A DNA stretch of 64,000 nt from Lepidodermella squamata (GCA_047495785.1 JBLDXI010000019.1:1674001-1738000); one strand, 5' to 3'; positions 1,871-48,625 are shown, counted from the stretch's first letter. Made by a program: numbers and translations. The notes: a model not told the origin generated them from the sequence alone.

Positions 1871-1978
1871 TTTAAATAGTTTTCAACATGAGACGCTTTA
1901 TGCACCTACTCGAAGAATAATAATAATCATATCAAACCGGATTATATGGTTTATTCGGCCACTTTTGCGATTTTCAAA

Positions 1979-4405
1979 ATGCGGGGGGAGATTCTCATCG
2001 TTTTAGTTGCTATTTTTCTACCTGGTAGCTTACAGATCGAAGACAGGACAATTCTAATCCCTGGACTGATTCTTTTCGACGAAAGAGGCAACGTCAGCTA
2101 TAAGACATGCCTAGCTACTCGAAAGGTGGTAATCGACCATATCAATGCGAGGGATGACATTCTTCCGGGCTACAAACTCGAAATCGAATCAATCGATGAA
2201 GGCTCTGGTGCTTTCACAGCAGCTCGGAGTTTCTTCAATTTCTACAACAGATGGGAATCGGCTCATCTCAACGGATCCTTAACCATTTCTCCTGTAGTCA
2301 TGGGCCCGACTGTCTCCTGCCAATCTGTCGCTCATTCGCTGAAAATGATGAGTATGATCGAAATTACTGAGCAATGCAACGGGCCTTATCTAACTGGCCT
2401 GAAACAGAAGTATCTGACGAATATGTATCGAATGCTACAACCATCCCAGCTATCTGTAGTCGCAGTTCTTCTATTCCAGTTGCAAATGAAGTGGAAGCAA
2501 ACTGGAGTTATTTCAAACTACGCGAATCCTAACGACTACACCAATGCTCAAACTTTACAGCGGCTGTCAGTCGCGAATGGCATTGATGTTATCTACTCTG
2601 GGCTGGATGATGGGGAAATCACTGAAACAACACTGATTACCATGAAGTCAAGCGGGGCGAGGATTTTTAGTATGATAACATCATTTGTCCCGGCTTGTAT
2701 CAAGTTACTTTGTAGAACTCATCAATATGGAATGAGATCACCTCAATACGTTTTCATCCTCCTATTCAGTTGCTACTTCCCACCCGATAGTTCGCAATTG
2801 ATGCTGCCAGAAGGTTGCACTCGTCAAATGATCAATGAGCAATTGAAAACAACCATTTGGGCTGGTCTTTATCGAGGATCAATGGAAACTGCTATGAGCA
2901 CTTCTTTCGGCTATCAATCTTCCTGGTTCCAGGAGCAAGTTGCCAAAGAACTGAACTATGCCCCGACATCGGATGGGGATAATCTACCGATATGCCACGA
3001 CGTTGCTATGGCAACAGCTTTAACCCTGGACAGAGCTGATAAAACGTTGAAAAGCTATCACAATTCTTCGCTAACTAATTTCAGCTCAAATCCAACACTT
3101 GTTTCTGCGGTGATCAACCAAGCTGCGAGGCAGATGGATTTCATGGGGCTGAGAATAGGTCGTGTTCAGTACTCGCGTGATATCGAGGTTATCAACGACC
3201 GGATGTTGATAGGCCAATGGCATAGAAACAGTCTAAGGTTTCTGTTCCGTGCTCAGCGGAGAGATAGCGAAACAACACTTAACGTGTCAGCTTACGATCT
3301 AATAACGATTAATTTCACCATCTGGCCAACAAAACATAACAGTCCGCCGAGTGATTTGTCGAAAGTTTCTGAAATCCTAGAGCTGCCAAATGAAACTGTG
3401 CAAGGGACACTGTCTTCTATCGCAATCCTAGGAATAATCGTCACTTCAATTCAATTTGCGACCTACGTGAAGAAGACCCGGAAACCCGGCTGCAGCTTAG
3501 CCTTCAAGAGCTTGGCGTTCAAATTTCCACTCCTAGCCGGGAGTATCGTATTGAATTTGAACAGCATGTTAACTGTACTTCTACCTGCATCGTATCCGCT
3601 ACTTGAGTGTAACTTGAGATTCATCCTAACAACCATTGGCTTCGTGTTATTTGACGCCGTGATCATAACTCAAGCAACAATCATTTCTCATCTTACAACA
3701 CCGATTCAAAAGCTGAAGAAGAAGAGAAATCCATCAAAAAGCTTGAAGTCGATACGAGTTAACAAGGCGGAGGTGATGTCAACTGACAGGGTGGACCCTG
3801 CGAAATTAAAAGAGCTGAAATTCGACATAACTCGCCGAATTTGCCTAATCACAATTATAAGCTTCACCATTTTGGTAGTATGGCTGTCAGGGGTTGATAG
3901 AGTCTCAGCCGAATTCTTACCTTCACCCATTCACTATAGCGAAATTGAGGATACCTATTGCAGGAGAATCAACTTGTACTGCACCTCCAAGTACTTACAA
4001 AATTGGCTGGAGGCTCTGCTAGCAATTCACGGCTGTTATCTCATCTCATCTATGTTCATCGCGAATCGTAATAATAGGAACAAGGAGAAGATGACCCCCG
4101 AGTTCAAACTTGTCCGTTTGGCCTCGATTAACTCAACGGTTCTTTCGGCTTGTATCGTTCTTGTGATGTTAATTTTTTTGACTTCGACCAGTTCGCCGGG
4201 TTGGATGCTGAATGTTGTTCTTGGTATGGGTTGTACAATTTACTCGACGGTAACGTGTGGCGTCCTGTTTTATTGCCCTTCGAACAACACGGTCGCCAAT
4301 CCTCCGTCGCGGCTTTTCGGAGTCGTGTCTTCGGAAAATGCGACACGGGTGGCGACCCCGAAACATCAGCTCAAGACGAAAGATGTTGTGAAGGTTGTCG
4401 GGTAG
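1979..4405 (+). CDS. Class C GPCR, GABA-B-receptor-like (signal peptide, Venus flytrap, 7TM), intronless
   Basis: INARDDILPGYKLE N-terminal motif is typical of GABA-B/ANF-receptor flytraps, followed by 7 TM helices. ATG 1979 chosen because it matches the paralog start context ttttcaaaATG. Confidence 0.85.
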   Translation: MRGEILIVLVAIFLPGSLQIEDRTILIPGLILFDERGNVSYKTCLATRKVVIDHINARDDILPGYKLEIESIDEGSGAFTAARSFFNFYNRWESAHLNGSLTISPVVMGPTVSCQSVAHSLKMMSMIEITEQCNGPYLTGLKQKYLTNMYRMLQPSQLSVVAVLLFQLQMKWKQTGVISNYANPNDYTNAQTLQRLSVANGIDVIYSGLDDGEITETTLITMKSSGARIFSMITSFVPACIKLLCRTHQYGMRSPQYVFILLFSCYFPPDSSQLMLPEGCTRQMINEQLKTTIWAGLYRGSMETAMSTSFGYQSSWFQEQVAKELNYAPTSDGDNLPICHDVAMATALTLDRADKTLKSYHNSSLTNFSSNPTLVSAVINQAARQMDFMGLRIGRVQYSRDIEVINDRMLIGQWHRNSLRFLFRAQRRDSETTLNVSAYDLITINFTIWPTKHNSPPSDLSKVSEILELPNETVQGTLSSIAILGIIVTSIQFATYVKKTRKPGCSLAFKSLAFKFPLLAGSIVLNLNSMLTVLLPASYPLLECNLRFILTTIGFVLFDAVIITQATIISHLTTPIQKLKKKRNPSKSLKSIRVNKAEVMSTDRVDPAKLKELKFDITRRICLITIISFTILVVWLSGVDRVSAEFLPSPIHYSEIEDTYCRRINLYCTSKYLQNWLEALLAIHGCYLISSMFIANRNNRNKEKMTPEFKLVRLASINSTVLSACIVLVMLIFLTSTSSPGWMLNVVLGMGCTIYSTVTCGVLFYCPSNNTVANPPSRLFGVVSSENATRVATPKHQLKTKDVVKVVG

Positions 4406-6859: not shown

Positions 6860-6968
6860 AAAGATCGGCCTAAGCCGTCGTGGATGCCCGGACGCATCCC
6901 TGCCTAGGCAAGCCGAAACCGTCCCAAGGTCGCCTTGTCTGCGGCCTTGAACTGCAGCCCAGACACAA
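6860..6968 (-). pseudogene. Truncated copy (3' half only) of the unknown ncRNA family, type A
   Basis: Has the 3' double hairpin and the GAACTGC.GCCCAGAC segment shared with the 14327 copy. Lacks the 5' stem and the promoter boxes. Confidence 0.65.
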
Positions 6969-7580
6969 AAGTCTTATTCAATTCTTGAGATTTGCTCATG
7001 TTAGGCAAAGCCATTATTTTCAGGTGTGGATAATCAGCTGCGCCGGATTCGATGTTTCAGTTTTTTCACCTTTGAAAATGTCAAGCAAATCGAGTTAACC
7101 GACAAGGGGTTCCCAATTCCTGGCCCACTTCGACGTTTTAAGAGACACTATTTGTTTAATTTTCTGAAAATCATGTTTATTTCAAAATGCTTTATATTTG
7201 CTACTTCTGGGAAGATAATCGTCCAAGGGAACAGTTGGTGGTGACACGAATTTTGTTGTTTATCTTATGTGAGCGCAATAGAGGTAACACGGCGCTTTGT
7301 TTAAATTAAATTAAACCATCGTCAGACGTAACGGTAAGCCTTGCAAAATGTTGTTCAAAATTTTCGATAAATTAACTAATTTTGTTCTCGCGAGTGGACC
7401 TGTTGGGACCAGCAACAAAAGTCAATTTGAAAATAATCAAAATTATTTATTGAAAACCCCTAGTTAGTAAAGCAACATCATAGGAATTTGAAGGACCTTT
7501 AAGCAACAAATAGCTGGCGCGATCGAGATTTGTCTCGGCTTTTCCGCCATCTGATCTTAACTTTGATTTATTCGGAATTC

Positions 7581-7847
7581 AAAAAAGCGGCCCAAGCCGC
7601 CGTGGATGCGCCCGGTCGCATCCCGAGCACAGCTCCTCATTTTCATAATAAATTCACAAAAAAACTTACCGCTGCGGATGGGGCCTAGCTGCTTTATTGA
7701 ATGAAAATTCGAAAATGCACGAAGTTGGCTAACAGTAACAGCTATGGTACACCTTAGACAGGTGACCAACAGGCAAGCAGCACGCAGGCTGGGCAGTGGC
7801 AGAGATAGACAATAACGCACACACAGACGCTTCGGCCTCTCCGCAGC
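7581..7847 (-). ncRNA. Unknown structured ncRNA, type B copy 1 (about 265 nt)
   Basis: 5' stem GCTGCGGA/TCCGCAGC, 3' GGATG..CATCC and GCGGC-TTGG-GCCGC hairpins, T6 tail. Boxes at -25..-30 (7872) and -70 (7917). Confidence 0.7.
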
Positions 7848-8176
7848 AACAAAAGGCTATCCTAAAAGCTTGACTACGTCTTTTTAGGAACCTCGGCTCT
7901 TTATGCCAATTCGTCTGCATATTCGCAAGTATTAATTGATGCATGGAAAGCGCTGACTGCCACGTGTTTAATAAAGGAAAATGCTGGCTCAATGCGTTAC
8001 GTTCGCTCAATGACCTCAGCTTAACGTCGTCGAGGTCAAACACAACAATTATTAGGCCTCTTTGATTTTAAGAGCCGAACTCAATTCAACCCTTCGAGGT
8101 GATTTTCCAGCGAAAATCGTTCTTATCAATTAATAAGTCGGTTTTTTTTTAAACGAAAATGCGGACACTGATTGCA

Positions 8177-8200
8177 TGCAAGCGGACGACCCGGCAGCAA
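8177..8200 (-). pseudogene. Deleted remnant of type C ncRNA 5' end
   Basis: tgcaagcggacgacccggcagcaa resembles 16531-16567 with an internal deletion and lies at the syntenic position between types B and D. Confidence 0.4.
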
Positions 8201-8666
8201 ATAAAATGTGTTAAAACCTGAGAGGATCGCTATGTTCCCTGTCCCAATTATTAGTTCATTAGTCCATTCTTATTATTCTAGCTAGCGCTCGTGACAGTAA
8301 TATCACGTGACGCACTTCATTATAACTCATCTAATTTGGCGTCCTCTTGGCTCTTGGCTATATAAGCCCTAAATAATAACAATAAAGATATCAGTTGATC
8401 TGCTTTACTGAACTGCCTTTTGTATTACTCATTATTCAGTCTAATTGCTGTTATTAGTTTGCCCCCGAACCAGGTCAGGGATATCAACCCTTCATTGGCG
8501 CTGAGACCCGGGACATCTTACGACCTCACTACTTTTATTTTAATTTCACCTCTCGTTACGGTATTCTTTGACCTTCGATTCTGAAATATTTTGAAATTAA
8601 GGTCGAAATTTTCGAAAATCCTCGGAACCTTCACCTATTTCAACTGAAATTTGCTTTTAGCGTTTC

Positions 8667-8841
8667 AAAGTCCGGCCTAAGCCGTCGTGGATGTCCGGTC
8701 GCATCCCGGTCCGCTAGTGTCCTGCACCGAGCGTTTACACACCTACAGTCCAGGCCGCTTCCCATGTGAAGCTTGCCACCTGAACATAGGGACTGCGGAG
8801 GGGGCTTCAATCGCAAGCCAAAGTTCCGGCCACCCCGCAGC
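8667..8841 (-). ncRNA. Unknown structured ncRNA, type D copy 1 (about 175 nt)
   Basis: Same 5' stem and 3' hairpins, with G-U pairs that work only on the minus strand. Boxes at 8866 and 8911 (ATTTGCAT). Confidence 0.72.
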
Positions 8842-9065
8842 AAATTTTAGTAAATCAAAATTCCTGGCTGCAATTTATTGTGAAAAACTTCAGTTCTAGA
8901 CAAACAATTTGCATATTATTTTTTAAAAATCAGTTTTTTTATTGATGGTTGAAGCAGCTAAAAGTCACTTGACGCAGACACGTGCACTCAATTAAATATG
9001 ATGCCAAGAACAATTTTATCTTGATTGAAATAGCCAATTATTTATTGACATTGAAATTTGGTAGA

Positions 9066-9257
9066 ATGACTATAATTTTTCTCCTGAATTTCTGAATTTC
9101 CCTGTTTATTCACGTATCGGTGAAAATGACCTGGTTCAAGACAACGCCTTCCAACCTTCAATCTCGAGTGACATCTGCATGTCGCATGGCATTGCGAAGA
9201 AGCGAAACCGAAAAAAACCCATCCAAGCAACTTCTTCATCCGCGACTTAGAAACCGA
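9066..9257 (+). pseudogene. Truncated, indel-bearing duplicate of the 5' end of the ankyrin/C-lectin gene
   Basis: Aligns to 17628-17826 with deletions and stops abruptly at a tRNA remnant. Confidence 0.8.
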
Positions 9258-9451
9258 AATTCCCGGGTCGTGGGTTCGAGCTCCACAACGGGCGGCTGCG
9301 CACTTTTTGCCAATTAGCATGGTTCAGCTCCAATATTGAGGAAAATAGCTGGCTTCTTATTTAGCAGGGAATCGAACCCTCGTCTCTCGTGAGACTTACG
9401 GGATACTAATTAATCGCAGTTTCTAAGGTTCGAGTCTCCCGGAGGGCGCCA
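9258..9451. pseudogene. Three tRNA remnants: Lys(CTT)-like 3' half (9258-9294, +), Asp-like fragment (9364-9408, -), unassigned 3' half (9410-9451, +)
   Basis: B-box T-arms GGGTCGTGGGTTCGAG..GGGCG, reverse complement of GGGAATCGAACCC..GGGATACT, and GGTTCGAGTC..GGGCG. Both + remnants are followed by T runs. Confidence 0.6.
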
Positions 9452-9632
9452 GCTTTTCAAAAACTTATTGATAGTTTAACGTTAATGTTGAGAATACCTT
9501 TATTTAAATTTGACTCACATACACGGGGGATTATCAGCTCAAATGTTAGATCGATCCACCTTAACCTTTCTCGATTTTTCGCGATAAGCATAAGCAGTGA
9601 TTTTTGCAAAAAACTCATTTCAGAGCAAAACT

Positions 9633-9704
9633 TTCCCTGACCGGGAATCGAACCCGGGCCGCCGCGGTGAAAGCGCGGAATCCTAACCACTAGACCATCA
9701 GGGA
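9633..9704 (-). tRNA. tRNA-Glu(TTC)
   Basis: TCCCTGATGGTCTAGTGGTTAGGATTCCGCGCTTTCACCGCGGCGGCCCGGGTTCGATTCCCGGTCAGGGAA forms a full cloverleaf with A and B boxes and a T4 terminator. Confidence 0.95.
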
Positions 9705-9839
9705 GATATGTATTGGGAGGCTTGTTTCGAGATGATGATCACATAGCAAGCCGAGACGCAGTTATGTGAAGTTAAATCTTGCAAGATTATGTGATGAATT
9801 TTCAAAAGATTGCTGAAATTCATAAAAGAAAAAACAAGT

Positions 9840-9911
9840 GGGCCCGCTCGGGAATTGAGCCCGAGACCGCTCGGGCCCGAAGCGAGAATCATACCCCTAG
9901 ACCAACGGACC
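9840..9911 (-). tRNA. tRNA-Pro(CGG), divergent or possible pseudogene
   Basis: GGTCCGTTGGTCTAGGGGTATGATTCTCGCTTCGGGCCCGAG...; T54 is C in the B box and there is a C-C mismatch at the base of the anticodon stem. Confidence 0.75.
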
Positions 9912-10059
9912 TGCGGTATTTAACCTTCCTGGGCTTCGAACATGACAACAGCCCCGCCTTCTCAAACCATGGAATACACAACACCATGGGCATATCTTGG
10001 AAAGAGAATCGCAGAAAAAAAATTGAATAGTACATGTCGCGTGCTTTTTTAACCAATCA

Positions 10060-10470
10060 TTTTATTTATTTTTATTTAAAGAGCTAGAACGCCCAGAAAA
10101 GGACAGCTCAGACAAGTGATCAATAGAAAAGTAAAGACAACAACAAAATTGAAAATCGAAATAGCATATAAAAAGTAGACTGATCGGGGTCAGTATAATA
10201 TCGAAATCAATGCAATAGCAAAAAATATGTGAATATTCAACAATCAGAGTAGAGCGGCATTAATGTTGCAATAGTGTAGATAAGCAACTTGGCGACATGC
10301 CTTTGCTGACTCCGCTTCATGAACGCTCGAAGGCATTTGATTCCACAAGTTTCCACAAGTCAAACACAAGACAGCTACATGTGAGTGAGAGTCTCTACGC
10401 GCTCTTCGTCACCAGGTAAACAACTTGACCTCAAGCCGACACTAGCTTATTCAGTACGTAATATCATCTT
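10060..10470 (-). mobile_element. Probable 3' end fragment of a non-LTR retrotransposon (CR1/L2/Jockey-like)
   Basis: Minus strand encodes LWNQMPSSVHEAES, resembling the LWNxLP..V..A.S terminus of LINE ORF2. It is followed by a short 3'UTR and an A-rich tail (plus-strand T-rich 10060-10077). The 5' boundary is approximate. Confidence 0.45.
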
Positions 10471-10983
10471 GTTCCGTACCTACCTTTCAGCCTGTCGCGT
10501 TGGCACGGAAGATTTTGACCTTTGACCTTGTAGCTGAGGCAATTCCGGTGGCGACATACAATCATGGCGACAACATCCAATTATGCCTAAGGGATTAATC
10601 GAAAGAAATCATTTTCCTAATGACGTCAATGACTGACAGAAGATGGATGCGACAAGGATTGTAATCACCCAAGATCACTTAACGCCTACAATATTAATCA
10701 GCAGCATGGAGAACTACTGAACTGCTGAGACCTTCTTCTATATTTGCTAACTGTGGAAAAACAATTCGCAATAGAGTGAGTATGCATTTTATGAGTGGGC
10801 GTCACCGCCTATAAAAACCCACTGCTTATTCCACTGCCTATAGCCTATAAAAAGACTTCACTTTCATCGGAAGGATCAGTACATATCCCAAGTCAAAAAG
10901 GACAGCAATTTTCCAGGCGGCGGCTAAATAGCACTTAAAACCAGATTCTTTGATTCATTTGTCCACTTCTTGCATTTTTCAAA

Positions 10984-13422
10984 ATGCAGGAAAGGATATT
11001 CGTCGCCTTGTCGCTATTAGCGAGTTTTCTACCAAGTGGTCTGCAGATTAAAGACAAGAAAATTCTCATCCCCGGACTGATTCTTTTCGACGAAAGAGGT
11101 AACGTCAGCTATAAGACATGCCTAGCTACTCGAAAGGTGGTAATCGACCATATCATTGCGAGGGATGACATTCTCCCGGGCTACAAACTCGAAATCGAAT
11201 CAATCGACGAAGGTGCTGGAGCTTTTACAGCAGCTCGGAGTTTCTTCAATTTCTACAACAAATGGGAATCGGCTCATCTCAACGGATCCTTAACCATTTC
11301 TCCTGTAGTCATGGGCCCGACTGTCTCCTGCCAATCTGTCGCTCATTCGCTGAAAATGATGAGTATGATCGAAATTACTGAGCAATGCAACGGGCCTTAT
11401 CTAACTGGCCTGAAACAGAAGTATCTGACGAATATGTATCGAATGCTACAACCATCCCAGCTATCTGTAGTCGCAGTTCTTCTATTCCAGTTGCAAATGA
11501 AGTGGAAGCAAACTGGAGTTATTTCAAACTACGCGAATCCTAACGACTACACCAATGCTCAAACCTTACAGCGGCTGTCAGTCGCGAATGGCATTGATGT
11601 TATCTACTCTGGGCTGGATGATGGGGAAATCACTGACATGACCCTGATTACCATGAAGGCAAGCGGGGCGAGGATTTTTAGTATGACATCATCATTTCCC
11701 CCGGCTTGTATCAAGCTACTTTGTAGAACTCATCAATATGGAATGAGATCACCTCAATACGTCTTCATCCTCCTTTTCAGTTGCTACTTCCCACCCGATA
11801 GTTCGCAACTGTCGCTACCAGAAGGTTGCACTCGTCAAATGATCAATGAACAATTAGCAACAACTATTTGGGTTGGTCTTTATCGCGGATCCATTGAAAC
11901 TGCTGTGAACACTTCATTCGGCTATCAATCTGCTTGGTTCCAGGATCAGGTTGCCAAGGAATTGAACTATGCCCCTACATCGGATGGAGATAATCTACCG
12001 ATATGCCACGACGTTGCTATGGCAACCGTTTTAACCCTGGACAAAGCTGACAAAACGTTGAAAAGCTATCACAATTCTTCGCTAACTGATTTCAGCTCAA
12101 ATCCAACACTTGTTTCTGCGGTGATCAATCAAGCTGCGAGGCAGATAGATTTCATGGGGCTGAGAATAGGACGTGTTCAGTACTCGCGTGATATCGAGGT
12201 TATCAACGACCGGATGTTGATAGGCCAATGGCATAGAAACAGTCTAAGATTTCTGTTTCGTGCCCAGCGAAGAGATAGCGAAACAACACTTAACGTGTCA
12301 GCTTACGACCTTGTGCTGATTAATTCCACCATCTGGCCAACGAAACATGGCGGTCCGCCGAGTGATCTGTCAAATGTTTCCGATATCGTAGAGCTGCCTA
12401 GCAAAATCGCGCAAGGGACATTGTCTTTTTTCGCTATCCTGGGAATAATTGCGAATTCATTTCAATTCGCGTTTTACGTGAAAAAGAGTCAGAAGCCCGA
12501 CTGCGGTTTAGTCTTTAAGAGCTACGTGTTCAAACTCCCACTCCTCGCCGGGAGTGTTATATTGAATTTGAGCAGCCTGTTAACCGTGCTTCTGGCTGCA
12601 TCGTATCCACTACTTGAATGCAACTTGAGATTCATCTTAACAACCATTGGCTTCGTGATATTCGACGCCGTGATCATGACTCAAGCAACAATCCTTTCTC
12701 ATCTGACAACACCGATTCAAAAGCTAAAAAAGAAGAATAGAAAGCCATCAAAAAGCTTAAAGTCTATAAGAGTTAACAAGGCTGAAGTGCTGTCCGCTGA
12801 CAGGGTGGACCCTGCGAAATTAGAAGATCTTAAATTCGACATAACCTGCCGAATTTTCCTAATCACAATTATAAGCTTCATCATTTTGGTAGTATGGCTG
12901 TCAGGGGTTGATAGAGTCTCAGCCGAATTCGTGCCATCGCCAATTCTGTATGACGAGCTTGAGGATACCTATTGCCGGAGCATCAACTTGTACTGCACCT
13001 CCAAGTACTTACAAAATTGGCTGGAGGCTCTGCTAGCAATTCACGGCTGTTATCTCATCGCATCTATATTCATCTCAAATCGAAACAATAGGAATAAGGA
13101 GAAGATGACCCCCGAGTTCAAACTTGTCCGTTTGGCCTCGATCAACTCGACTGTTCTTTCGGCTTGCATGGTTCTTGTGATGCTGATTTTTCTGACATCG
13201 ACCAGTTCACCGGGCTGGATGTTGAATGTTGTTCTTGGTGTGAGTTGCACAATTTACTCGACGGTAACGTGTGGCGTCCTGTTTTATTGTCCTTCAAACA
13301 ACACGGTCGCCAGTCCTCCGTCTCGGTTTTTCGGAGTCGTAACTTCGGAAAATGCGACACGGGCCGCGACCACGAAATATCAGCACTATAAGACGACGGA
13401 GTTGGTAACGGTTGGCGGGTAG
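10984..13422 (+). CDS. Class C GPCR, GABA-B-receptor-like; close paralog of 1979-4405
   Basis: 812-aa intronless ORF, collinear with and highly similar to the 1979 copy. Confidence 0.85.
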   Translation: MQERIFVALSLLASFLPSGLQIKDKKILIPGLILFDERGNVSYKTCLATRKVVIDHIIARDDILPGYKLEIESIDEGAGAFTAARSFFNFYNKWESAHLNGSLTISPVVMGPTVSCQSVAHSLKMMSMIEITEQCNGPYLTGLKQKYLTNMYRMLQPSQLSVVAVLLFQLQMKWKQTGVISNYANPNDYTNAQTLQRLSVANGIDVIYSGLDDGEITDMTLITMKASGARIFSMTSSFPPACIKLLCRTHQYGMRSPQYVFILLFSCYFPPDSSQLSLPEGCTRQMINEQLATTIWVGLYRGSIETAVNTSFGYQSAWFQDQVAKELNYAPTSDGDNLPICHDVAMATVLTLDKADKTLKSYHNSSLTDFSSNPTLVSAVINQAARQIDFMGLRIGRVQYSRDIEVINDRMLIGQWHRNSLRFLFRAQRRDSETTLNVSAYDLVLINSTIWPTKHGGPPSDLSNVSDIVELPSKIAQGTLSFFAILGIIANSFQFAFYVKKSQKPDCGLVFKSYVFKLPLLAGSVILNLSSLLTVLLAASYPLLECNLRFILTTIGFVIFDAVIMTQATILSHLTTPIQKLKKKNRKPSKSLKSIRVNKAEVLSADRVDPAKLEDLKFDITCRIFLITIISFIILVVWLSGVDRVSAEFVPSPILYDELEDTYCRSINLYCTSKYLQNWLEALLAIHGCYLIASIFISNRNNRNKEKMTPEFKLVRLASINSTVLSACMVLVMLIFLTSTSSPGWMLNVVLGVSCTIYSTVTCGVLFYCPSNNTVASPPSRFFGVVTSENATRAATTKYQHYKTTELVTVGG

Positions 13423-14326
13423 ATGTGCGATTAAACCAAGGGGGATTGTGTGTATTAAATCATAATTGTAAATTTATTTCTGATAATAAAAATGAAACAA
13501 AATTTCATCTGTATTTTCCGAATGAGTCCCGCTTCTGTTCATTTACCTGGGTCAAAACAGCTAATAACGCCTAATAGAAACACGTCGCCCAAATTTTAAA
13601 TCAACCAAATTTGCAGCCCAAAATCAACGTTCGTGCAGCACTTTGTCAAAATTTGCGCAGCGCATTTTGACCAAACGCAGCACAAATTACGCAACCTGCA
13701 GCCGGATTTTAATGGATGCAGCGCGATTCAATTATTGCGCCGCGCAAAGACTTGACACGTCAAGACTTGAAATTATTTCCCGAATTTTTCAAAAATGCGA
13801 TTTTTTTTGGTTGCGTGAATCATAATTATTGCAGATGGCGCCGTGATTCGTCGGGCGATTTTTTGCAAAAAAACTCGAAAAAGCAATAATGCGGAAACGC
13901 GCTTCTTTCAGAATTTTTCCTACCAAAAACCGTTCCCTGACGGAATTTCCGGTTTTACAAGCGCTGAGTTGAAGGTGAGATCTACATGCCTTATTTCTTT
14001 TTTATCTATCTATAGTTGCGACTAATACCAAAATTATTATTATTTAATAAAACGAACTCAATCGTTTCTAACTTGAATTTCTAGCTACCTCGAAATAACA
14101 AGTTCTACGAAGGTTTTCCATCAATTTATGCTACCTTATATTTCCTGAAATATTCAGAAAATTCCACATTCCACAGCAGCCTGATAGAAAATCGCGTCGC
14201 ACCAACAAATCAGCTTTTTGATACCCTGTGAAGATGGTCAGCAGAAAAATTTGGCTGATAATTACAGCCACTAACAAAGGGTCGGAAAGATGAGCAAGAT
14301 TACGGCTGAAATTATATCAAATTTGC

Positions 14327-14500
14327 AAAGATCGGCCAAAGCCGCCGTGGATGCCCGGTCTCATCCCTGTCCCCGACTATGACCTGTCCTTATGACCTGT
14401 CCTCGAACTGCTGCCCAGACAAATTTTACGCCCGAAGCCGCGACTGCGGAGGGGGCCTGCTTTAATCTCTCGCAAGCCATCAACCCGGCCTCTCCGCAGC
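14327..14500 (-). ncRNA. Unknown structured ncRNA, type A copy 2 (about 174 nt)
   Basis: GCTGCGGAG/CTCCGCAGT stem, GGCTTGC/GCAGGCC stem and 3' double hairpin. Boxes at 14525 and 14570. Confidence 0.72.
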
Positions 14501-15378
14501 AAATGACCTCAAACCGGAAATCTTGCCTACGTGTTTTCGTGAAACTCGGCCTTCTCAGCTATTTTGTTAGCATATTCGTAATGGAACACACGCAGTTTTA
14601 ATTGCTGCCGTGAAAACGCCGACTGCCTACTGTGTAATGGAGGGGGTTAATTTCGAAGCCATCATTATAAGTTAACTTTTCCTATTATGTCGACTTCATC
14701 GCCTGGAAAAAAAGTATTATTTTCGAAAATTTTCGTCAACTTAAGTCGGCTTTATCTCGCAAACATAAATGTACTACGGCCGATTTTATCGCTTCATAGT
14801 CGACTTGGTCGACGGCTGATTTTTGTTCGAAATAGAGCGTTTTGACCTCAAAAACTCTTGCTGACCTAATTGTATAAGAATCATAGCAATAAAAGAAGCT
14901 GGTAAAAAGTAGGTCACAGCTAATGATGATCAATATGAAACTGGCGCCTGCTGTTTTTTCCAGTTAAAGCCAGCAAAGTCGATATTTCGGCTTTATTATA
15001 AAGGCGGCTAGGTATTTTAAAAGCTGTCATTAGTTGAATCGAATTTGTGCAAAATGCAAAATGAGTGTTGGCTCAATTTCCGCGAAACAGGCGTTCCAAA
15101 AGCTGAATGCAAAAACTCATCACTGCTATATTCATCACTGCTGAGAAGCCTATCTTACAGGCGACCAGGTGGGTGGTGCCAGGATTTTTTGTAGATTTTC
15201 TATATGATCGCAAGAAAGTTGAAAGGGAGAATAATTCAATTCAAGCTAAAGTATAAGGCGTAACGGTATCGTTAACGGAACTAATTTTTGCAAATAGCTG
15301 CAAATAGCTAGCTGGCAAACGAGATTTGTATCCGCTTTCCTGCCATCTGATTTCAAGTTTGATTTATTCAACATTCAG

Positions 15379-15639
15379 AAAAGCGGCCCAAGCCGCCGTG
15401 GATGCGTCCGGTCGCATCCCGAGCACAGCTCCACAATTTCATAATAAACTCACAAAAAACTTACCGCTGCGGATGGGGCCTAGCTGCTTTATTGAGTTAA
15501 AATTCGAAAATGATACAATATTCAGCGAGACACCTTAGACAGGTGAGCAACAGGCAAGCAGCACGCAGGCTGGGCAAAGGCAGAGAGATAAACAATAACG
15601 CACACACAGACATAACCATCGCTACGGCCTCTCCGCAGC
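15379..15639 (-). ncRNA. Unknown structured ncRNA, type B copy 2 (about 260 nt)
   Basis: Paralog of 7581-7847. Boxes at 15664 and 15709. Confidence 0.7.
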
Positions 15640-16413
15640 AACAGCAGGCTATCCTAAAATCTTGGCTACGTCTTTTTAGGAATTCCGGTCCTTTCAGCCA
15701 TTTCGTTTGCATATTCGCTATTAAACACACAGTATTTAATTGCAGCATACGGGAGACCCCGGCTGCCACGTGTGTAATAAAGGAAAATGCGGCTCAATGC
15801 GTTCCGTCGAAATGACCTCAACTCATCTCAACGTCTTCTAGGTCAAACACATCAAATACTGCCTATTTTATTTTAATGCCGCACACCAATATTCTGTTTG
15901 GCCGAGCAACTCAATTCAACTCTTCGGGGTGATGTTCCAACGAAAAGACCAGTAGGTAGAGGAAATCGTTCTTATCAATTTATAAGCCTGTTTTTGAAAA
16001 GTGAAAAAATTTCATCCATAAATCGAATTTTAAGGACATGGAAATCCTGATTTCCTGCGATTTATTGTGATTTACCGATTTAGATAATTTCATTTAATTT
16101 ATTTAGTCTCGTAAAAATTGATTTTGATTGATTGAAGGAGGTCCATGATTTAAGCCATAAAATAAAATAAAATCCAAAGCAGTGGTAACTGTAGCTTATT
16201 GTGGACTGGGCAAATTTGGAATTTACAGCTAAGGTGGAAACTGTTAGCTCTTCCAACACAACTTGATCAGTGACCAGACGTGGATTTTCTTGGAAAACCT
16301 GACCCAATATGCGGTAATCTACAGTCCACAAATGAGATTCTCAACGTTCCATTCGAAACTTTCAAGCAGAACGAGCTTGTCAGCCAATTTCAAATATGTT
16401 TTTGTTTTCTGCT

Positions 16414-16565
16414 AAAAAGATCGGCTTTTGCCGTTGTGGATGTCCGGTACCATCCCGGCCCGCTGGTTAGTCACCGAGCGATAGTTGAAGTAGACCCCTG
16501 TGGGTGGATGCTACTGACTGCGGAGGGGACTTGCAAGCAAGCCGACAACCCGGCCGCTCCGCAGC
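16414..16565 (-). ncRNA. Unknown structured ncRNA, type C (about 152 nt)
   Basis: 5' stem, two middle hairpins, GGATG..CATCC, CGGC-AAAA-GCCG and a T5 tail. Boxes at 16590 and 16635 (ATTTGCAT). Confidence 0.75.
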
Positions 16566-17236
16566 AATTATAATACATCAAAAACCTCTCGCTACCTTTT
16601 ATTATGGATCGAAATAATTTCGGGTAATTAATTTGCATATTCAATACTATATTCACCAAGCCGTTGATGGCCAAACTCATAAAGCTTGATAACTATTCTA
16701 TATAAGAAAGTAATAACGCTAGTGATTGCCGTGATAATAGTGCGCTAATGTAGGGCAAGTGTTAACTAAGCGCTATGAGCAACACAGATAGGTCAGTTTC
16801 GGGTCAATCCGCCCTCAGAGCTCCAAATGAGTACTTTCCGAGCAGCGTGAGCTGATTTAAAACTATTTTACGCGTGACCCATTTTCATTCGATAGAGAAT
16901 TGTCTGAAGTTTATGTAGATATGCACCGCCACGATACTCGAAAACAGCCCATTGACATCACCGGTAATTTTTCGCTGCAGATCATATTGATATTTGATTA
17001 TGTTAAATTATGAAATTTTCGAAATTTGCAGGACAGCCAGGAATCATCTTGCCGGTTCAAATGGCTAAATTGTTTGAACAAAGGCTGATTTTTTTACCTT
17101 CGGAAAGCAAGTTTTATTGTAAGTTCCCTCTCGTTACGGTTCTTTGACCTTCGATTCTGAAATTGAAGTCGAAATTCGCGACTCTGGTGATCTGTCACCT
17201 AATTTTAACTGAAATTTAATTTGTTTTCAGCGTTTC

Positions 17237-17411
17237 AAAGTCCGGCCTAAGCCGTCGTGGATGTCCGGTCGCATCCCGGTCCGCTAGTGTCCTGCACCGA
17301 GCGTTTACACACCTACAGTCCAGGCCATTGAAGCTCGAAGCTTGCCACCTGAACAATAGGGACTGCGGAGGGGGCTTCAATCGCAAGCCAAAGTTCCGGC
17401 CACCCCGCAGC
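17237..17411 (-). ncRNA. Unknown structured ncRNA, type D copy 2 (about 175 nt)
   Basis: Near-identical to 8667-8841. Boxes at 17436 and 17481. Confidence 0.72.
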
Positions 17412-17425
17412 AAATTTTCGCAAAT

Positions 17426-17488
17426 CAAAATTCCTGGCTGCAATTTATTGTGAGAAACTTCAATTCTGGACAAACCATTTGCATATTC
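17426..17488 (-). promoter_or_regulatory. Bipartite snRNA-type external promoter of the ncRNA family (representative copy)
   Basis: On the plus strand, NNCTRC lies 25-30 bp and GCATATT begins exactly 70 bp from the inferred +1 in all six full copies. Confidence 0.7.
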
Positions 17489-17627
17489 TCTTTGAAAAAT
17501 GAATTTTTTATTGATGGTCGGAAAAGTCACATGACACAGACACACGCACTCAATTAAACATGAGACCAAGAGCAATTTTATCTCGATTGAAATAGCTAAT
17601 TATTTATTGACATTGAAATTTAGTAAA

Positions 17628-20600
17628 ATGACTAGAATTTTTCTGAATTTCCTAACAATTTCCCTGATAATTCACGTATCAGCTAACAGAATCGGTGAAA
17701 ATGACCTAGTTCAAGACAACGCCTTTCAACCTTCCATCTCGAGTGACATTTGCATGTCGCATGGCATTGCGAAGAAGCGAAACCGAAAAAACCCGTCGAA
17801 GTTCTTCATCCGCGACTTTGAAACCGGCATTTTCTCGCCTCAACACTGCCTGAATGACGAAATTTTCAACCTCGAAGTTTGCGCCTGTATCCCGGTTGAA
17901 ATCGAAGACTCCGATCGGCCGATCAATCGAAATCGCCCTATTCGATCGATGGCTCAAAATGATACTGGCTTTTCGATTTTACACGGCGCAGCTTGGCACG
18001 GCTCGATCCGCGTCGCTAGGACTTTGATCGAAGAAGGCGCGGATATTTTCATTGAAACTAACAACAAAGAATTACCGATTCATCTCGCCGCTTATCGAAA
18101 CCAGGTTAAAATCGTGCAAGTTCTACTTGAAGCCGCTGAGGCTGAAAAGTCGCTGGGTCGTATGGTTTCAGCTCGGCAATTCCAGGGCGAGACGCCGTTT
18201 TATTACGCAATAAAGGGCCAGGCATTTGACGCGGCTTCGAAATTGCTCGAGAACGGGGCTTCGGCCGAAATTCCAGACAACGACGGTCTAGCTCCGATTC
18301 ATTATTGCGCGAAAATGAATTTGCGAGAGGCGGCTGAATTTCTGCTGAAACACGGCGTTTCAATGGCGAGCCGTACGACAGATGCCAAGAATGAGTCGTT
18401 GACAGCGTTTCACATTGCCGCGGCTTTTAATTCTTTTACAATGTTTGAATCTGATCAATTGGCCGCTCGGTTGACGGACTACGTCGAGGCGAATCGCGAT
18501 GAGGCGGCGAAAATTATGTGTTTAGCGGTTGAGAATGGAGCTCTGGAATTTTCGAAGGTTCTCGTTCGACTCGACGGTTCCTTAGCATCACGGCCAAACT
18601 GCTCGATAGATACGGTAATCAGGATTTACAACACTCTTTTCTACGATATTTTAACCTAATACATTATGTTATGTTGTCCACTAATTTTCAATGGTATTTA
18701 ATTTTGATTTTTTGGGATTTTCGGCCTGCATGTTAAATTTTGTCGTATTTAAATTCGGTTTCTAGTTGGAAATTTCCGATTTTTTTAATTAAAATTAAAA
18801 TGTATTTTTTCAAGATCGGTAATTTTTGCAAATTTAGGGATCTAACTCTACATTTTCCCAAAAATTATGGTTCGCCTGCTGTTTTCTCCAATTCATTGAA
18901 TGCTCAATTCATATAGGTGCCGGTTGTTGACGCAAAATTCGTCGATGACTAATACTACTCTTTACTATACAGACTATCTTTTAGCAAAATCGAATTTACG
19001 TGAGCGGAACCTAAATTTCTGTTGCCGAACCAATTTTACATTCGCGAAAAATTTAAAGAATTTTGGGCATCGTATGATTTCTAAAGTCTTGCACAGAATT
19101 TCACTCTGAATTTAAAAATATTTTATTTAGAATTACGATGACCTTTTATAATATCTTTGGAAGTTCTGATAAGTGGTTCCAGGCCCAATAAATATTCCGA
19201 AATTTGGTTCGGTAACAGGAGGCCCCTTTACATGTTGATAACACGAACGGCTTTCATACGACACGGGTAAATGACGCCTTACATGCTTTTACTATAACCA
19301 TTTCAACCCATGTCCGTCCTGGAACTCTTTTTCGGGCTGCTTTTTGTGTTTCGCTGTGCCTTTTTATGACGACCCGCGTGATGTCACAGCAGTTTAAGAG
19401 CCGCTAACAGCTGAACGCGAGTACCAGAAGTTCGCCAGTTATTAGCCGTAACACTCAAAGAGCCACGTGGAGTATTCTGTTCGCATTTAGCCTTCTGGTT
19501 GTAGAAATTTTATATTAACATTTTGTGGGCCGTATCGCAGTAACCCGAAGTCGAAAAGACACGTTCGATTTCGCATTTTCCCGCCAGAACGAGTAGTAGT
19601 AGTATAGCCAAGCAGAGCAGTTGCCGAACGAAGCACGGTTAACCGCGCCAGGGCCAAGCAGAGAAGGCTGCTCTGGTCGAGGATCAGTGAGATTTGCGTA
19701 TTGAAGTTGGCGTTACGCGTAACGATGCGATTTTCGGCCGCTTGGTCAGAACTTCAATCGCCTCGGGTTGGGAAGGCTCGCCCGAATGTTGATTAGTCGA
19801 TTTCTTACTTCAGCCGACAGTTGGTTGATCAAGGCTTTGGCCTTACCGTAGGACTGGACGCTCAGGTCGCGCAATGTTGGCGGCAAGCAGGAGTTAGGTG
19901 TCTCTTAGCTGATCTGTGAAACGAGTTTCAAGACCAGTTGCCAGGTCGAGGCGAAGACGACGCAAATCGTTGCTTTGAAATTTGGTGTCGTCGCGCAGGT
20001 AGTTCATTGAATTGCGAATTTGGGACCACGACGATTCCGCAGTGTGCATCAGCCACCTTTAGATGAAAGAAGAACAAGTGCAGATATCGCGAGATACCTC
20101 TGAATTCAAAACCAGGTCGATCATGATCCTCGAAATCTGGAGAAGCGTTCCTATGAGCCGCGGGTGGGCGTCCGTGAGCTTTAAGGAAGTCGAGATGTAG
20201 CTGGGTATAATTTAAAATTTCCTTACATATTTGTGAATGAAAGATTGCACCCTTAAATAACTTTAAAATTGAAATAAAAAAATGTAGAAAATTTAAGATT
20301 AACAATTTTTCACCGTGGGGATTCCGAAGTGACTTGTATCACATTGATTTACTGTAATCTCACGATCAAAACCATGGTGTTAATTACCATTAACGAAGCT
20401 TAAAAATTGAAAAAATATTTTAGGACCTTAATTTGGGTGTTGAAAATATTTGGAGAAAAATTCTCTGAAATTTGAATTTTTCGTTTATTTTTAGCAAAAG
20501 GAAATTTATGGCGCACCTCTGAGTATCGCCTGCTATCAAAATGACTCGAATATGGCCGAATTTCTACTTAAGCGCCAAGACGTTGACCCGAACGCGAAAG

Positions 20601-46718: not shown

Positions 46719-48625
46719 TTATTCGCTGTTCAGCTTTGCCAGCACCTCAGCGATCCCCTTGCCAAGATCAGCATGGCATTTCGTAAATTCAGCAACAGTT
46801 CGCTCCTGAATAAATTTCTGCGCATCCTTCAAATGATTGCCAATATTTTCCACCAATCGTTTACGCTCCTCAGGCTTAAGGACCTTGACCCAAAACTCGC
46901 CAACCTGCGTGTAATTATCCTCATCAGCCGAGTCATAACGCGCAACATCGCCCGTTGTAGTGAATCGGTGCTCGGCGAAATGTTCTCCCAAGCCGTGTTT
47001 CGGCCCGGAAAATGAGTTCGGGAAGTAATTCGGCGCTCCGCCCTGATTTTCAAAGCAAGCCGGCCCGTCGCGTTGGAAATTTCGAACAGGGCATTTCGGC
47101 CTGTTGACAGGCAGTTGCTGGTAGTTGGTGCCAAGACGGTGGCGATGCGCGTCCGAGTACGAGTACAAACGGCCCTGAAGCATCTTGTCCGGGCTGGCCT
47201 CGATGCCCGGGACCATGTGGGCCGGGGTGAAGGCCAATTGTTCGACTTCGGCGAAGTAATTCTCCGGGTTCCGGTCGAGGACCAACTCGCCGACGGGGAT
47301 CAACGGGAACTGCGAGTGCGGCCAGACTTTGGTTAGGTCAAAGGGGTTCCACTTCAGCTTTGCGGCCTCGTCGAATGTCATTACTTGGATCTGGAACGAC
47401 CAAGACGGGCGGTTGCCTTTGGCGATGGCATTGTAAAGGTCGCGGATGGCGTAGTCGGCGTCCTGCCCAGCAAGCTGAGTAGCCCGGGCCGCGTCCAAGT
47501 TCTTGATACCTTGGCACGTCTAAATGCGAGAAAAAATTAATTAAAAATTGAGAGCATGAATTTTGGTATATTGCTATAATTTAGAATTTTATTTAAAAAA
47601 TTCAAAATTAAATTCAAATTAAATTTTTAAAATATAAAAAACTCTGAAATTGTTGAGTTCTCAAATTTTAGAGAATCAAAATTAGGAGTTCTTGAATTTT
47701 GAATTTTGAATTTTGAATTTTCAAATGCCCGATTTTCAACTTGAATTTAAAAAAATGTGGAGAATCGGATTTAGGGTTGATTGGTTTGCTACCTATGCAG
47801 AAAAATTACTTTGAGGTGAAATTTGCAGTAAAAAGCCTCGCCCTGAGCGTTGACCAGCTTGAAGGTATGCGATCCATAGCCATTCATGAAGCGATAGCCA
47901 TCAGGGATGCCGCGTTCTGAGAACAAAAACGACACCTGGTGAAGCGATTCCGGCCTCAGGGAGATGAAGTCCCAGAACATATCAGCGTCCTTCAAATGCG
48001 TGGCCGGGTTTCGCTTTTGAGTGTGCACAAAGCTCGGGAACAAAATCGGATCGCGGATAAAGAAGACCGGCTAAAAATTCGAAATATTAACTCTAAAAAT
48101 AGTAATTAATCGAAAAATTACCGTATTATTTCCGACAAGATCCCAATTGCCCTCTTCGGTGTAGAATTTGACCGCAAATCCTCGAGGATCCCTTACAGTA
48201 TCGGCCGAGCCGCTTTCGCCTCCAACAGTTGAGAATCGAACAGCGACCGGGGTTCGTTTCCCGATTCCTTCGAAGACCTTAGCCTTGGAGTACTGGCTAA
48301 TGTCGTGGGTGACCTCAAAATATCCGAAAGCACCGGCGCCTTTCGCGTGAACTACACGCTCGGGGATGCGTTCGCGTTGAAAGTGGGACATTTCATCCTG
48401 TAAAAATTAGGTAAATTTATTGAATAAAATAAGGCGAAATAGTCTTACAGTGAAAATGAAATCCTGAATAAGAATAGGTCCGTGAGGTCCGGCGGTGAGA
48501 CTAGCGGTTTTATTACCGATCGGGGCTCCGTTGGCGGTGGTCATGATTGGATGATCCGAGGCCTTATCGCTATGCGCCTCCTTATATTCCAGCAATTGAT
48601 TGGCTGCTTTATCGCGTTGAGCCAT
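46719..48625 (-). CDS. CAT: Catalase (monofunctional heme catalase; 4 exons, about 504 aa)
   Basis: Exons 48625-48449, 48397-48122, 48070-47810, 47519-46719. [13 protein letters not shown] (distal His), [15 protein letters not shown] (proximal Tyr). Confidence 0.97.

Follow-up and report, generated by a model that had tools for sequence, protein, structure and literature searches.

Organisation of the cluster

The window, that is the whole 64 kb stretch of DNA analysed, contains at positions 6860-17411 six full minus-strand copies of a small gene and two remnants, and none elsewhere (Table 1). On the minus strand, the full copies all open with GCTGCGG, at 7847, 8841, 14500, 15639, 16565 and 17411. 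The genes are about 144-265 nt long, with a spacing of 0.72-1.09 kb. They belong to four types, with two intact copies each of A and C and a single one of B and D. The gene order B-A-D-C occurs twice, which shows, at the level of sequence, an ancestral four-gene array that was duplicated as one block. The B and D copies of the first block are decayed.

Table 1 Genes, remnants and predicted promoters of the cluster, with coordinates in the window
Feature	Coordinates	Strand	Remarks
Truncated B-like remnant	6860..6975	-	3' module intact (65.5 bits); part of B middle retained; no 5' hairpin; no promoter at correct spacing
Type A, copy A1	7581..7847	-	about 264 nt; 5' stem arms around insert of about 165 nt; internal GGTAAGT, then T7 run, 3' double hairpin and T6
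A1 promoter	7848..7927	-	box 1 (AATATGC core) 7913-7924; box 2 (A-rich + GTAGYCAAG) 7870-7889
Decayed D-like 5' hairpin remnant	8155..8203	-	no promoter boxes; no 3' module
Type C, copy C1	8667..8841	-	about 172 nt
C1 promoter	8842..8921	-	box 1 8907-8918; box 2 8864-8883
Type B, sole intact copy	14327..14500	-	about 171 nt; 13-nt tandem duplication in middle (14378-14403); only T3 after terminal hairpin
B promoter	14501..14580	-	box 1 14566-14577; box 2 14523-14542
Type A, copy A2	15379..15639	-	about 258 nt; internal T6 run; TTTTCT at end
A2 promoter	15640..15719	-	box 1 15705-15716; box 2 15662-15681
Type D, sole intact copy	16414..16565	-	about 149 nt; CGCU-C-GGU hairpin in common with type C
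D promoter	16566..16645	-	box 1 16631-16642; box 2 16588-16607
Type C, copy C2	17237..17411	-	about 172 nt; same as C1 in 5' hairpin (49/49) and 3' 72 nt
C2 promoter	17412..17491	-	box 1 17477-17488; box 2 17434-17453

There are seven occurrences of the 3' module, GGGATG..CCGG..CATCCAC-NN-CGGC-NNNN-GCCG, all of them minus-strand: one in each of the six full copies and one in a remnant at 6863-6906. Covariance models of this module and of the 5' hairpin were run over all 64 kb with filters off. At the cluster they score 58-69 bits and 68-76 bits respectively, and they recover a weak D-like 5' hairpin remnant at 8167-8198; beyond these copies and remnants, the best minus-strand matches in the 64 kb reach at most 8 bits. 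The sequence and covariance-model scans thus confirm the six copies and two remnants in one orientation, with the lengths and spacing originally described.

Shared architecture of the predicted RNAs and upstream elements

All types have the same 5' hairpin, consisting of a 9-bp stem P1, a 5'-side internal loop of 12-13 nt containing GGCCG, a second stem P2 of 5-7 bp, and a CC bulge. They also share the 3' module, in which two short hairpins are joined by AC-RR and followed by CTTT. The terminal tetraloop is variable and its stem invariant in all copies compared, and the CGCU-C-GGU hairpin is common to types C and D; both features had been described correctly. In minimum free energy (MFE) folds, types B, C and D have the same modular layout. 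The closing 5' stem proposed for type A is not recovered, and has a probability of about zero in the thermodynamic ensemble.

The folding energies themselves are unremarkable, with weak z-scores against shuffled sequences (-0.45 to -1.5, no significant difference). Among the family copies compared, in no base pair have both partners changed in a compensatory way. Three wobble changes, all one-sided, were seen in the stems, together with an invariant G1.U; these four wobble positions form pairs on the minus strand but not on the plus strand. The substitutions had been read as a signal of selection on an RNA. They are indeed strand-specific, but being one-sided they do not amount to covariation. 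Because no homologue was found outside the cluster (in the 64 kb, and in collections of viral, metagenome and prokaryote sequences, where motif scans gave chance matches only), no support comes from cross-species conservation or two-sided covariation.

The 100 nt upstream of the intact copies can be aligned without gaps across the four types. The sequence AATATGC is invariant at -76/-70, inside a box 1 at -77/-66 with consensus AATATGC(A/T)(A/G)A, and it is followed by a box 2 at -42/-23, consisting of an A-rich stretch and GYAGSCARG. The sequence between the boxes has diverged among the four types, while the boxes are kept in gap-free register; between C1 and C2 the promoters are 90% identical, again without gaps. 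In view of the invariant box and the fixed register of the second, this bipartite element is a predicted external promoter of the snRNA type. A conserved proximal element at a fixed upstream distance, as in snRNA-type (PSE-dependent) genes, is seen in the sequence of all four types. Box 2 is TATA-like in type C (CACAATAAATTG) and type D (CCATAATAAAAGG); in types A and B it reads CCTAAAAAGAC and CACGAAAACAC, neither of which is a TATA box.

If GCUGCGG is taken as +1, box 1 at -77/-66 is further upstream than a typical metazoan PSE, which counts against the snRNA-type reading.

The position of the promoter upstream and of a T-rich tail downstream, the wobble pairs that form only on the minus strand, and an MFE that is lower on that strand in five of the six copies (the exception is D, whose plus strand has the slightly better fold) together support reading the genes from the minus strand.

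Conservation and copy number

The duplicated genes allow the rate of change in different parts to be compared. C1 and C2 are identical at 49/49 positions of the 5' hairpin and 72/72 of the 3' part, making 121/121, and their flanks are only 70-85% identical; by our own arithmetic, the chance of 121 unchanged positions at 15% divergence is about 3e-9. The contrast suggests either purifying selection or gene conversion. In type A, the 3' 79 nt of A1 and A2 are 92-97% identical, as against about 80% in the interior and flanks. Both constant modules, 5' and 3', are thus conserved far above their flanks.

Gene conversion instead of selection could produce the perfect identity of C1 and C2.

The middle regions behave differently. 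Between A1 and A2, the 165-nt interior of type A shows about 80% identity and indels of 9 and 13 nt, which is about the divergence of the flanks; in type C, the apex of the middle hairpin likewise diverges at about the rate of the flanks. The suggestion that the middles are interchangeable and possibly guide-like is therefore not borne out: drift at a roughly neutral rate disfavours a guide role for the middle segments compared.

Read depth was taken from one public DNA run, and is a rough measure in which copies of less than 90% identity would be missed. B and D have a depth of about 90-120 and A2 and C2 one of about 230-300, compared to about 90 for single-copy contigs and 950-1540 for the repeats in the cluster spacers. 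The genes are therefore at about 1-3x, against 10-17x for the spacer repeats, and this low depth indicates that they are not a SINE. Hundreds of dispersed copies, by which the original prediction would have recognised a transposon, are not seen at this depth, and the boxes are present upstream. The depth, together with the location of all copies in one block-duplicated cluster, argues equally against a MITE.

The same observations bear on the proposal that there are no RNA genes here, but a non-autonomous mobile element or SINE, or DNA palindromes serving as protein-binding or recombination sites, spread by local duplication. We consider this the least probable of the readings discussed. It would account for stems that are invariant rather than covarying, for the unremarkable folding scores and for the high-copy repeats that fill the spacers. 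It does not fit the low depth of the genes or the strand-specific wobble changes, nor the rigidly spaced conserved boxes, which lie outside the hairpin-bounded unit and on one side only. Moreover, the paired copies derive from a single block duplication and not from transposition, and neither terminal inverted repeats nor target-site duplications were seen by eye.

Predicted transcription and relation to known RNA families

As predicted, a U run follows every copy, but it does not adjoin GCCG directly: 1-3 nt lie between, and the run varies from T3 to T6, the shortest (3 U) being those of B, C1, C2 and the B-like remnant. A sequence resembling CTTTG(A/C)AA is found 1-3 nt past the last hairpin, and is kept between C1 and C2 over 15 nt. 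Type A also has an internal T7 or T6 about 70 nt upstream of its 3' module, which is 97% conserved. For comparison, the tRNA genes within the window terminate in T4 and T6, and small-RNA loci of C. elegans transcribed by Pol III terminate at four or more T (PMC2527325).

These ends bear on the question of which polymerase is used. The genes could be type-3 Pol III genes like those of 7SK, Y RNA, U6 and the sbRNAs, with a PSE-like and a TATA-like box and termination at the U run, in which case La or a LARP7-like protein would be the expected partner of the U-tailed terminal hairpin. Consistent with this, box 2 of C and D is TATA-like and at a fixed distance from box 1, every copy has its T run 1-3 nt past a GC-rich terminal hairpin, the RNAs begin with G, and two co-oriented tRNA genes lie about 0.8-1 kb from cluster genes. 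We nevertheless regard it as possible but doubtful: T3 is short by the standard of the local tRNA genes, the T7/T6 of type A would stop the transcript ahead of a strongly conserved 3' module, and box 2 of A and B is not TATA. For the same reasons (except the last), Pol II appears somewhat more likely than Pol III as the polymerase of these snRNA-type genes.

An Rfam search had been proposed as a check on the original prediction. Run gene by gene, and also on 12.5 kb, it gave no relevant match even at E<=10. Individual families were also considered. For 7SK, there is some likeness in the long 5' hairpin with internal loops, the short 3' terminal hairpin followed by U (here after 1-3 nt, as T3-T6) and the external PSE-type promoter. 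However, 7SK is about 300-450 nt long compared to 145-265 nt here, there are four types here, three of them with too short a U tail, no 5' hairpin contains GAUC, and there is no Rfam 7SK match at E<=10 in the 12.5 kb or in any gene searched singly. C/D and H/ACA snoRNAs were rejected on inspection, since the six sequences have no common RUGAUGA/CUGA boxes or 3' ACA; Rfam gave no snoRNA match at gathering score.

The four human Y genes are clustered at 7q36 and the three vault RNA genes at 5q31. These vertebrate loci are likewise single, with few paralog types that have conserved terminal parts and differing middles; their RNAs are 80-140 nt or more, with upstream promoter elements of the snRNA type, as here. 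The difference is that the conserved part of Y and vault RNAs is a stem in which the 5' end pairs with the 3' end, while here there are separate local hairpins, no A/B boxes and no Rfam match. There is no terminal stem with a bulged C, as expected for Y RNA or sbRNA; the 5' end pairs locally in P1, and a hairpin of 4 bp, likewise local, makes up the 3' end. Vault RNAs require internal A and B boxes; we found no box A, and a partial box-B-like string in B and the remnant only.

It might be argued that the family is a highly diverged form of a known RNA (7SK, an Sm-class snRNA variant, RNase MRP, or a vault/Y-type RNA), beyond the reach of the Rfam models in a fast-evolving lineage. The lineage is poorly sampled, an adjacent class C GPCR has no relative at E<=1e-20, and the 5' hairpin and U-tailed 3' terminal hairpin are superficially 7SK-like. 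We consider this improbable, in view of the Rfam result, the missing GAUC pair, the unpaired 5' and 3' ends and the absence of internal A/B boxes. In addition, four paralog types with only the end modules in common is a pattern that we know of in none of these families.

Spliced leader (SL) RNA genes are usually of the snRNA type, multi-variant and clustered, and SmY genes are similar. The cluster could thus encode alternative SL donors with long leaders, or Sm-class cofactors like SmY. Types A and B carry donor-like and Sm-like strings: in A a perfect GGUAAGU precedes a U-rich tract, and B has GUAAAAUUUGUCUGG, which resembles a donor and an Sm-like site. The U4 of this genome presumably has a non-canonical Sm site, ACUUUCUGG. 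However, neither donor nor Sm site is conserved over the four types. GGUAAGU occurs only in A (about +185) and GUAAAA in B (about +72), nothing is conserved at an equivalent position in C or D, and these two also have no U-rich Sm-like site between the hairpins. The leaders, at 70-185 nt, would be far too long, and we know of no precedent. A role as SL RNAs or SmY-like cofactors of this class is therefore very improbable.

The closest parallel is with the snlRNAs and sbRNAs of C. elegans, which have PSE/UM1 or UM3 promoters (PMC2527325, PMC1474057). Like the members of the present cluster, they are small structured RNAs restricted to one lineage, each with a gene of its own. Strongly invariant PSE-type motifs, in some cases accompanied by a TATA-like element, stand upstream in fixed register, and several paralogs have a scaffold in common. 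There is no likeness in sequence or structure, and the boxes differ (here AATATGCAAA). The sbRNAs end in at least four T and have a Y-RNA-like stem of both ends, unlike the unpaired ends found here, with only T3 in three types.

On the basis of these observations, we propose, with a probability of about 70%, that the cluster is a single-locus, lineage-specific family of independently transcribed small non-coding RNA genes of the snRNA type. The lack of an Rfam match, the common rigid promoter, the conserved modules and the low depth agree with the minus-strand, lineage-specific small-RNA family put forward originally. A PSE-binding (SNAPc-like) factor would recruit the polymerase, and transcription would start at GCUGCGG or up to about 10 nt upstream. 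The conserved CTTTG(A/C)AA beyond the last hairpin may act as a Pol II 3' box. Proteins common to all types would bind the constant 5' and 3' modules and make up a stable RNP with them, and the distinction between types would reside in the conserved middle parts, for example the C/D hairpin and, in type A, the 80 nt preceding the 3' end.

The host belongs to a poorly sampled invertebrate lineage, and the family fits no catalogued RNA family. More speculatively, and rather unlikely at present, the four types might be subunits of an undescribed class of RNP, in which the constant ends recruit a protein core and the conserved middles are adaptors or guides. SmY RNAs are cofactors of trans-splicing in nematodes, and one possibility for such an RNP class is that its members would similarly be lineage-specific cofactors of spliced-leader trans-splicing.

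Copies and arrangement of the predicted RNA-gene cluster

The predicted small-RNA genes, of four paralogous types (A to D), form a real cluster that is restricted to positions 6860-17411 and lies far beyond chance. The 64-kb window contains GCTGCGG seven times on its minus strand; six of these occurrences mark the 5' ends of units. A 3' string, GGGATG..CCGG..CATCCAC-NN-CGGC-NNNN-GCCG, also occurs seven times, always in minus-strand orientation and within 6886-17263. Two covariance models were then run over both strands of the whole window with filters off. R1, which describes the 3' module, matches exactly the seven 3' modules (58-69 bits), while R2, which describes the 5' hairpin, matches the four 5' hairpins of the B/C/D type (68-76 bits) and, weakly, a decayed D-like remnant (8167-8198). 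No other minus-strand match to either model in the window exceeds about 8 bits, and low-stringency blastn gives the same picture. String search, covariance models and blastn thus confirm the six full minus-strand copies and two remnants of the original prediction, and the model search recovers only these cluster copies and the D-like remnant.

Features of the cluster and its surroundings. The 5' ends are those found by string search for GCTGCGG on the minus strand; depth is summed contig depth, not copy number, and is ~90 for single-copy contigs (baseline).
Feature	Position	Strand	5' end	Depth	Details
Class C GPCR gene	1946-4405	plus			ANF_receptor + 7tm_3, ~810 aa, apparently intronless
Truncated B-like copy	6860-6975	minus			no 5' hairpin
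A1	7581-7847	minus	7847
D-like stub	8155-8203	minus			decayed 5' stub only
C1	8667-8841	minus	8841
Block upstream of C1	9116-9256				~100 nt, contains ATGCAGAT
tRNA-like fragments	9260-9460	both			several; T-arm + acceptor strings
tRNA-Glu(UUC) gene	9633-9704	minus			63.5 bits
tRNA-Pro(CGG)-like gene	9840-9911	minus			32 bits (weak), mismatched stems
Class C GPCR gene	10984-13422	plus			ANF_receptor + 7tm_3, ~810 aa, apparently intronless
Spacer segment	13740-13938
B	14327-14500	minus	14500	90
Spacer repeat	14735-14933			950-1540 (range of three)
A2	15379-15639	minus	15639	~233 (3' half)
Spacer repeat	16128-16326			950-1540 (range of three)
D	16414-16565	minus	16565	~119
Spacer repeat	16725-16923			950-1540 (range of three)
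C2	17237-17411	minus	17411	~260-300
Ankyrin ORF	17607-18659	plus
Block upstream of C2	17691-17826				~100 nt, contains ATGCAAAT (17748-17755)
Catalase ORF	46719-47498	minus			C-terminal 259 aa, Pfam 2.4e-74

Comparison of the two halves by blastn reveals a block duplication (9256-8533 with 17826-17112, 8146-7507 with 15995-15301, and 6902-6844 with 14369-14311). On the minus strand, the genes of each block follow one another in the order C, D, A, B as coordinates fall, and each block is adjoined by one of the plus-strand class C GPCR genes. The four types are older than the duplication. Decay has hit only B and D, and these only in the first block, so every type retains at least one intact gene (two each of A and C, one each of B and D).

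The second GPCR is not on record, and a search of 5.8 billion proteins returned no relative at E<=1e-20. The lineage is therefore essentially unsampled, and the synteny route to orthologues is closed. Both tRNA genes have the orientation of the RNA cluster and are found 0.8-1 kb upstream of C1. The nearest named atlas clusters to the catalase ORF are mostly bacterial, in a type of search that cannot show gene transfer.

Depth was taken, as summed contig depth, which is not copy number, from the only public run found to contain this sequence, a DNA data set (~90x). The four spacer segments reach ~780-1540 against ~90 for single-copy sequence; they represent high-copy repeats, or TE fragments, that have inserted among the RNA genes. 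The genes themselves show no such pile-up, which fits a family limited to roughly one locus, at >=90% identity. Dispersed copies, as of a transposon, had been named as an outcome that would overturn the prediction; instead the depth over the genes is 90 to ~300, compared to 950-1540 over the spacer repeats.

Predicted RNA architecture and sequence constraint

Types B, C and D have the same modular layout in MFE folds. Their 5' hairpin has a 9-bp stem (P1), an internal loop of 12-13 nt in its 5' arm, which includes GGCCG, a second stem of 5-7 bp (P2) and a CC bulge. The middle forms one or two hairpins particular to the type, and is followed by a 3' module in which a 5-bp hairpin, whose loop contains CCGG, is connected by an AC-RR linker to a last hairpin of 4 bp with a free tetraloop. 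As originally described, this tetraloop varies (UUGG, UUUG, UUAG or AAAA) on a stem whose pairs are invariant, and a CGCU-C-GGU hairpin is common to C and D. Type A has an insert of ~165 nt between the arms of P1, and the probability of its proposed P1 is close to zero in the thermodynamic ensemble.

None of the nine 3'-module pairs varies, and 11/16 are invariant in the 5' hairpin, where three more have a one-sided wobble change; neither contains a two-sided change. Energy z-scores against dinucleotide shuffles are -0.45 to -1.5. Support for the predicted structure comes from constant complementary segments with varying loops, and not from covariation or unusual stability. A kissing contact of the internal-loop GGCCGG with the ACCGG loop was dropped, being just 4 bp and missing in type A.

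The minus strand is supported as the RNA strand by the position of the promoter, by the T-rich tail, by four wobble positions that would become A-C mismatches on the plus strand (an argument also made in the original prediction), and by a lower MFE on the minus strand in 5/6 copies, the exception being D.

Comparison of C1 and C2 is informative about constraint. Background identity is 85% far upstream, 70% at -120/-81 and 70-80% downstream. The promoter is 90% identical and gap-free, and the RNA is identical at 49/49 positions of the 5' hairpin and 72/72 of the 3' part, with identity running on 15 nt beyond the last hairpin. All changes inside the RNA are at the apex of the middle hairpin. A simple calculation gives p ~3e-9 for 121 unchanged positions at 15% background divergence; gene conversion confined to the genes is an alternative explanation of this identity. 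A1 and A2 are 92-97% identical over the last 79 nt and ~80% identical in the insert, which has 9- and 13-nt indels and is no better conserved than the flanks.

The segments that vary most across types and copies are thus the least constrained. This weakens the earlier idea that the middles are interchangeable, guide-like modules, which gains no support from the A insert or the C apex, and nothing was found in favour of a guide mechanism. The middle of type B contains a perfect 13-nt tandem duplication (14378-14403, minus strand; AGGACAGGUCAUA twice), which may represent either a binding motif in two copies or simple slippage during replication.

Promoter and polymerase

The six intact genes were aligned gap-free on GCTGCGG (counted as +1), and also using MAFFT. 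AATATGC is invariant at -76/-70, inside a 12-nt element (box 1, -77/-66). A second conserved element (box 2, -42/-23) consists of an A-rich stretch then GYAGSCARG, and positions -2/-1 are TT. Between the two boxes the types have diverged in sequence, and the boxes are absent upstream of the D-like stub. Judged from sequence, such a one-sided bipartite element in rigid register is what characterises an external snRNA-type promoter. A mobile element or a DNA palindrome is contradicted by these one-sided external boxes, as it is by the depth and the strand-specific wobbles. A bacterial-style promoter and terminator were dropped on account of wrong spacing and the eukaryotic host genes and tRNAs.

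A box-1-like string, ATGAGCAAAT, lies at 6990-7000 (minus strand), ~25 nt before the B middle kept in the truncated copy. This copy could have arisen by an internal deletion of ~125 nt instead of a 5' truncation, or the string could be there by chance. The two C copies are each preceded by a block of ~100 nt, with 95% identity between the blocks. Because of an overlap with the start of the ankyrin ORF, these may represent a coding 5' exon and a truncated duplicate of that exon rather than a distal enhancer acting on the RNA genes.

Termination at Pol III small-RNA loci of C. elegans takes place in runs of at least four T (PMC2527325), and the terminal runs of the window's two tRNA genes are T4 and T6. 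The run after the last hairpin is T3 in B, C1, C2 and the remnant, T6 in A1, T4 in A2 and T5 in D. Both A copies also have an internal T7/T6 run ~70 nt upstream of their 97%-conserved 3' module, so that Pol III would stop short of the module. Type-3 Pol III transcription is a real possibility, since C and D have a TATA-like box 2. It has to accommodate the internal run in A, the T3 tails of B, C1 and C2, and a box 2 that is not TATA-like in A and B. These three features, with T3 tails set against the T4/T6 of the tRNA genes, make transcription of the Pol II snRNA type somewhat more likely than type-3 Pol III, in which case the conserved CTTTG(A/C)AA would be the 3' box.

Relationship to known RNA families

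The original prediction could match the genes to no known RNA family, and Rfam 15 bears this out: at the gathering score only the tRNA-Glu and weak tRNA-Pro-like genes are found, and at E<=10 neither the 12.5-kb region nor any gene alone gives a relevant family. A sub-threshold match of the 3' hairpins to Xoo2 stems from no more than a pair of GC hairpins plus a U run, and sub-threshold miRNA and lncRNA fragments are meaningless. A 24-base 3' motif has one match in metagenome contigs (inside a high-GC bacterial ORF), none in viral contigs and one in prokaryote genomes (a Desulfarculus MAG). A 15-base 5' motif has 104 viral matches; those of the loci that were re-scanned with both covariance models score <=23 bits (5' model) and <=30 bits (3' model), and at none are both modules found together. 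The matches in all these collections are due to chance, in high-GC DNA. A literature search on the conserved motifs returned unrelated primer matches only.

GGUAAGU and a U tract in A, together with GUAAAAUUUGUCUGG in B, hint at an SL-RNA or SmY-like role, but C and D share neither donor nor Sm-like site. Membership of the 7SK, Y, vault or snoRNA families was rejected, since for each of them a defining feature is lacking.

We conclude that a lineage-specific, single-locus, snRNA-type small-RNA gene family outside Rfam is a well-supported prediction; the present evidence is for genes, and not a demonstrated new mechanism. The kind of family is known, from the snlRNAs/sbRNAs of C. elegans and, in vertebrates, the loci of Y and vault RNAs; the family itself appears to be new. 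Its four types, with a common scaffold and a single locus, are reminiscent of the Y and vault RNAs, whose functions took decades to approach. If the genes are transcribed, they would represent a new small nuclear or cytoplasmic RNP for a very poorly sampled animal lineage, and would provide a compact two-box promoter of 80 bp for small-RNA expression in this organism. From a comparable family in a trans-splicing invertebrate it could be learned how RNP families of this sort originate.
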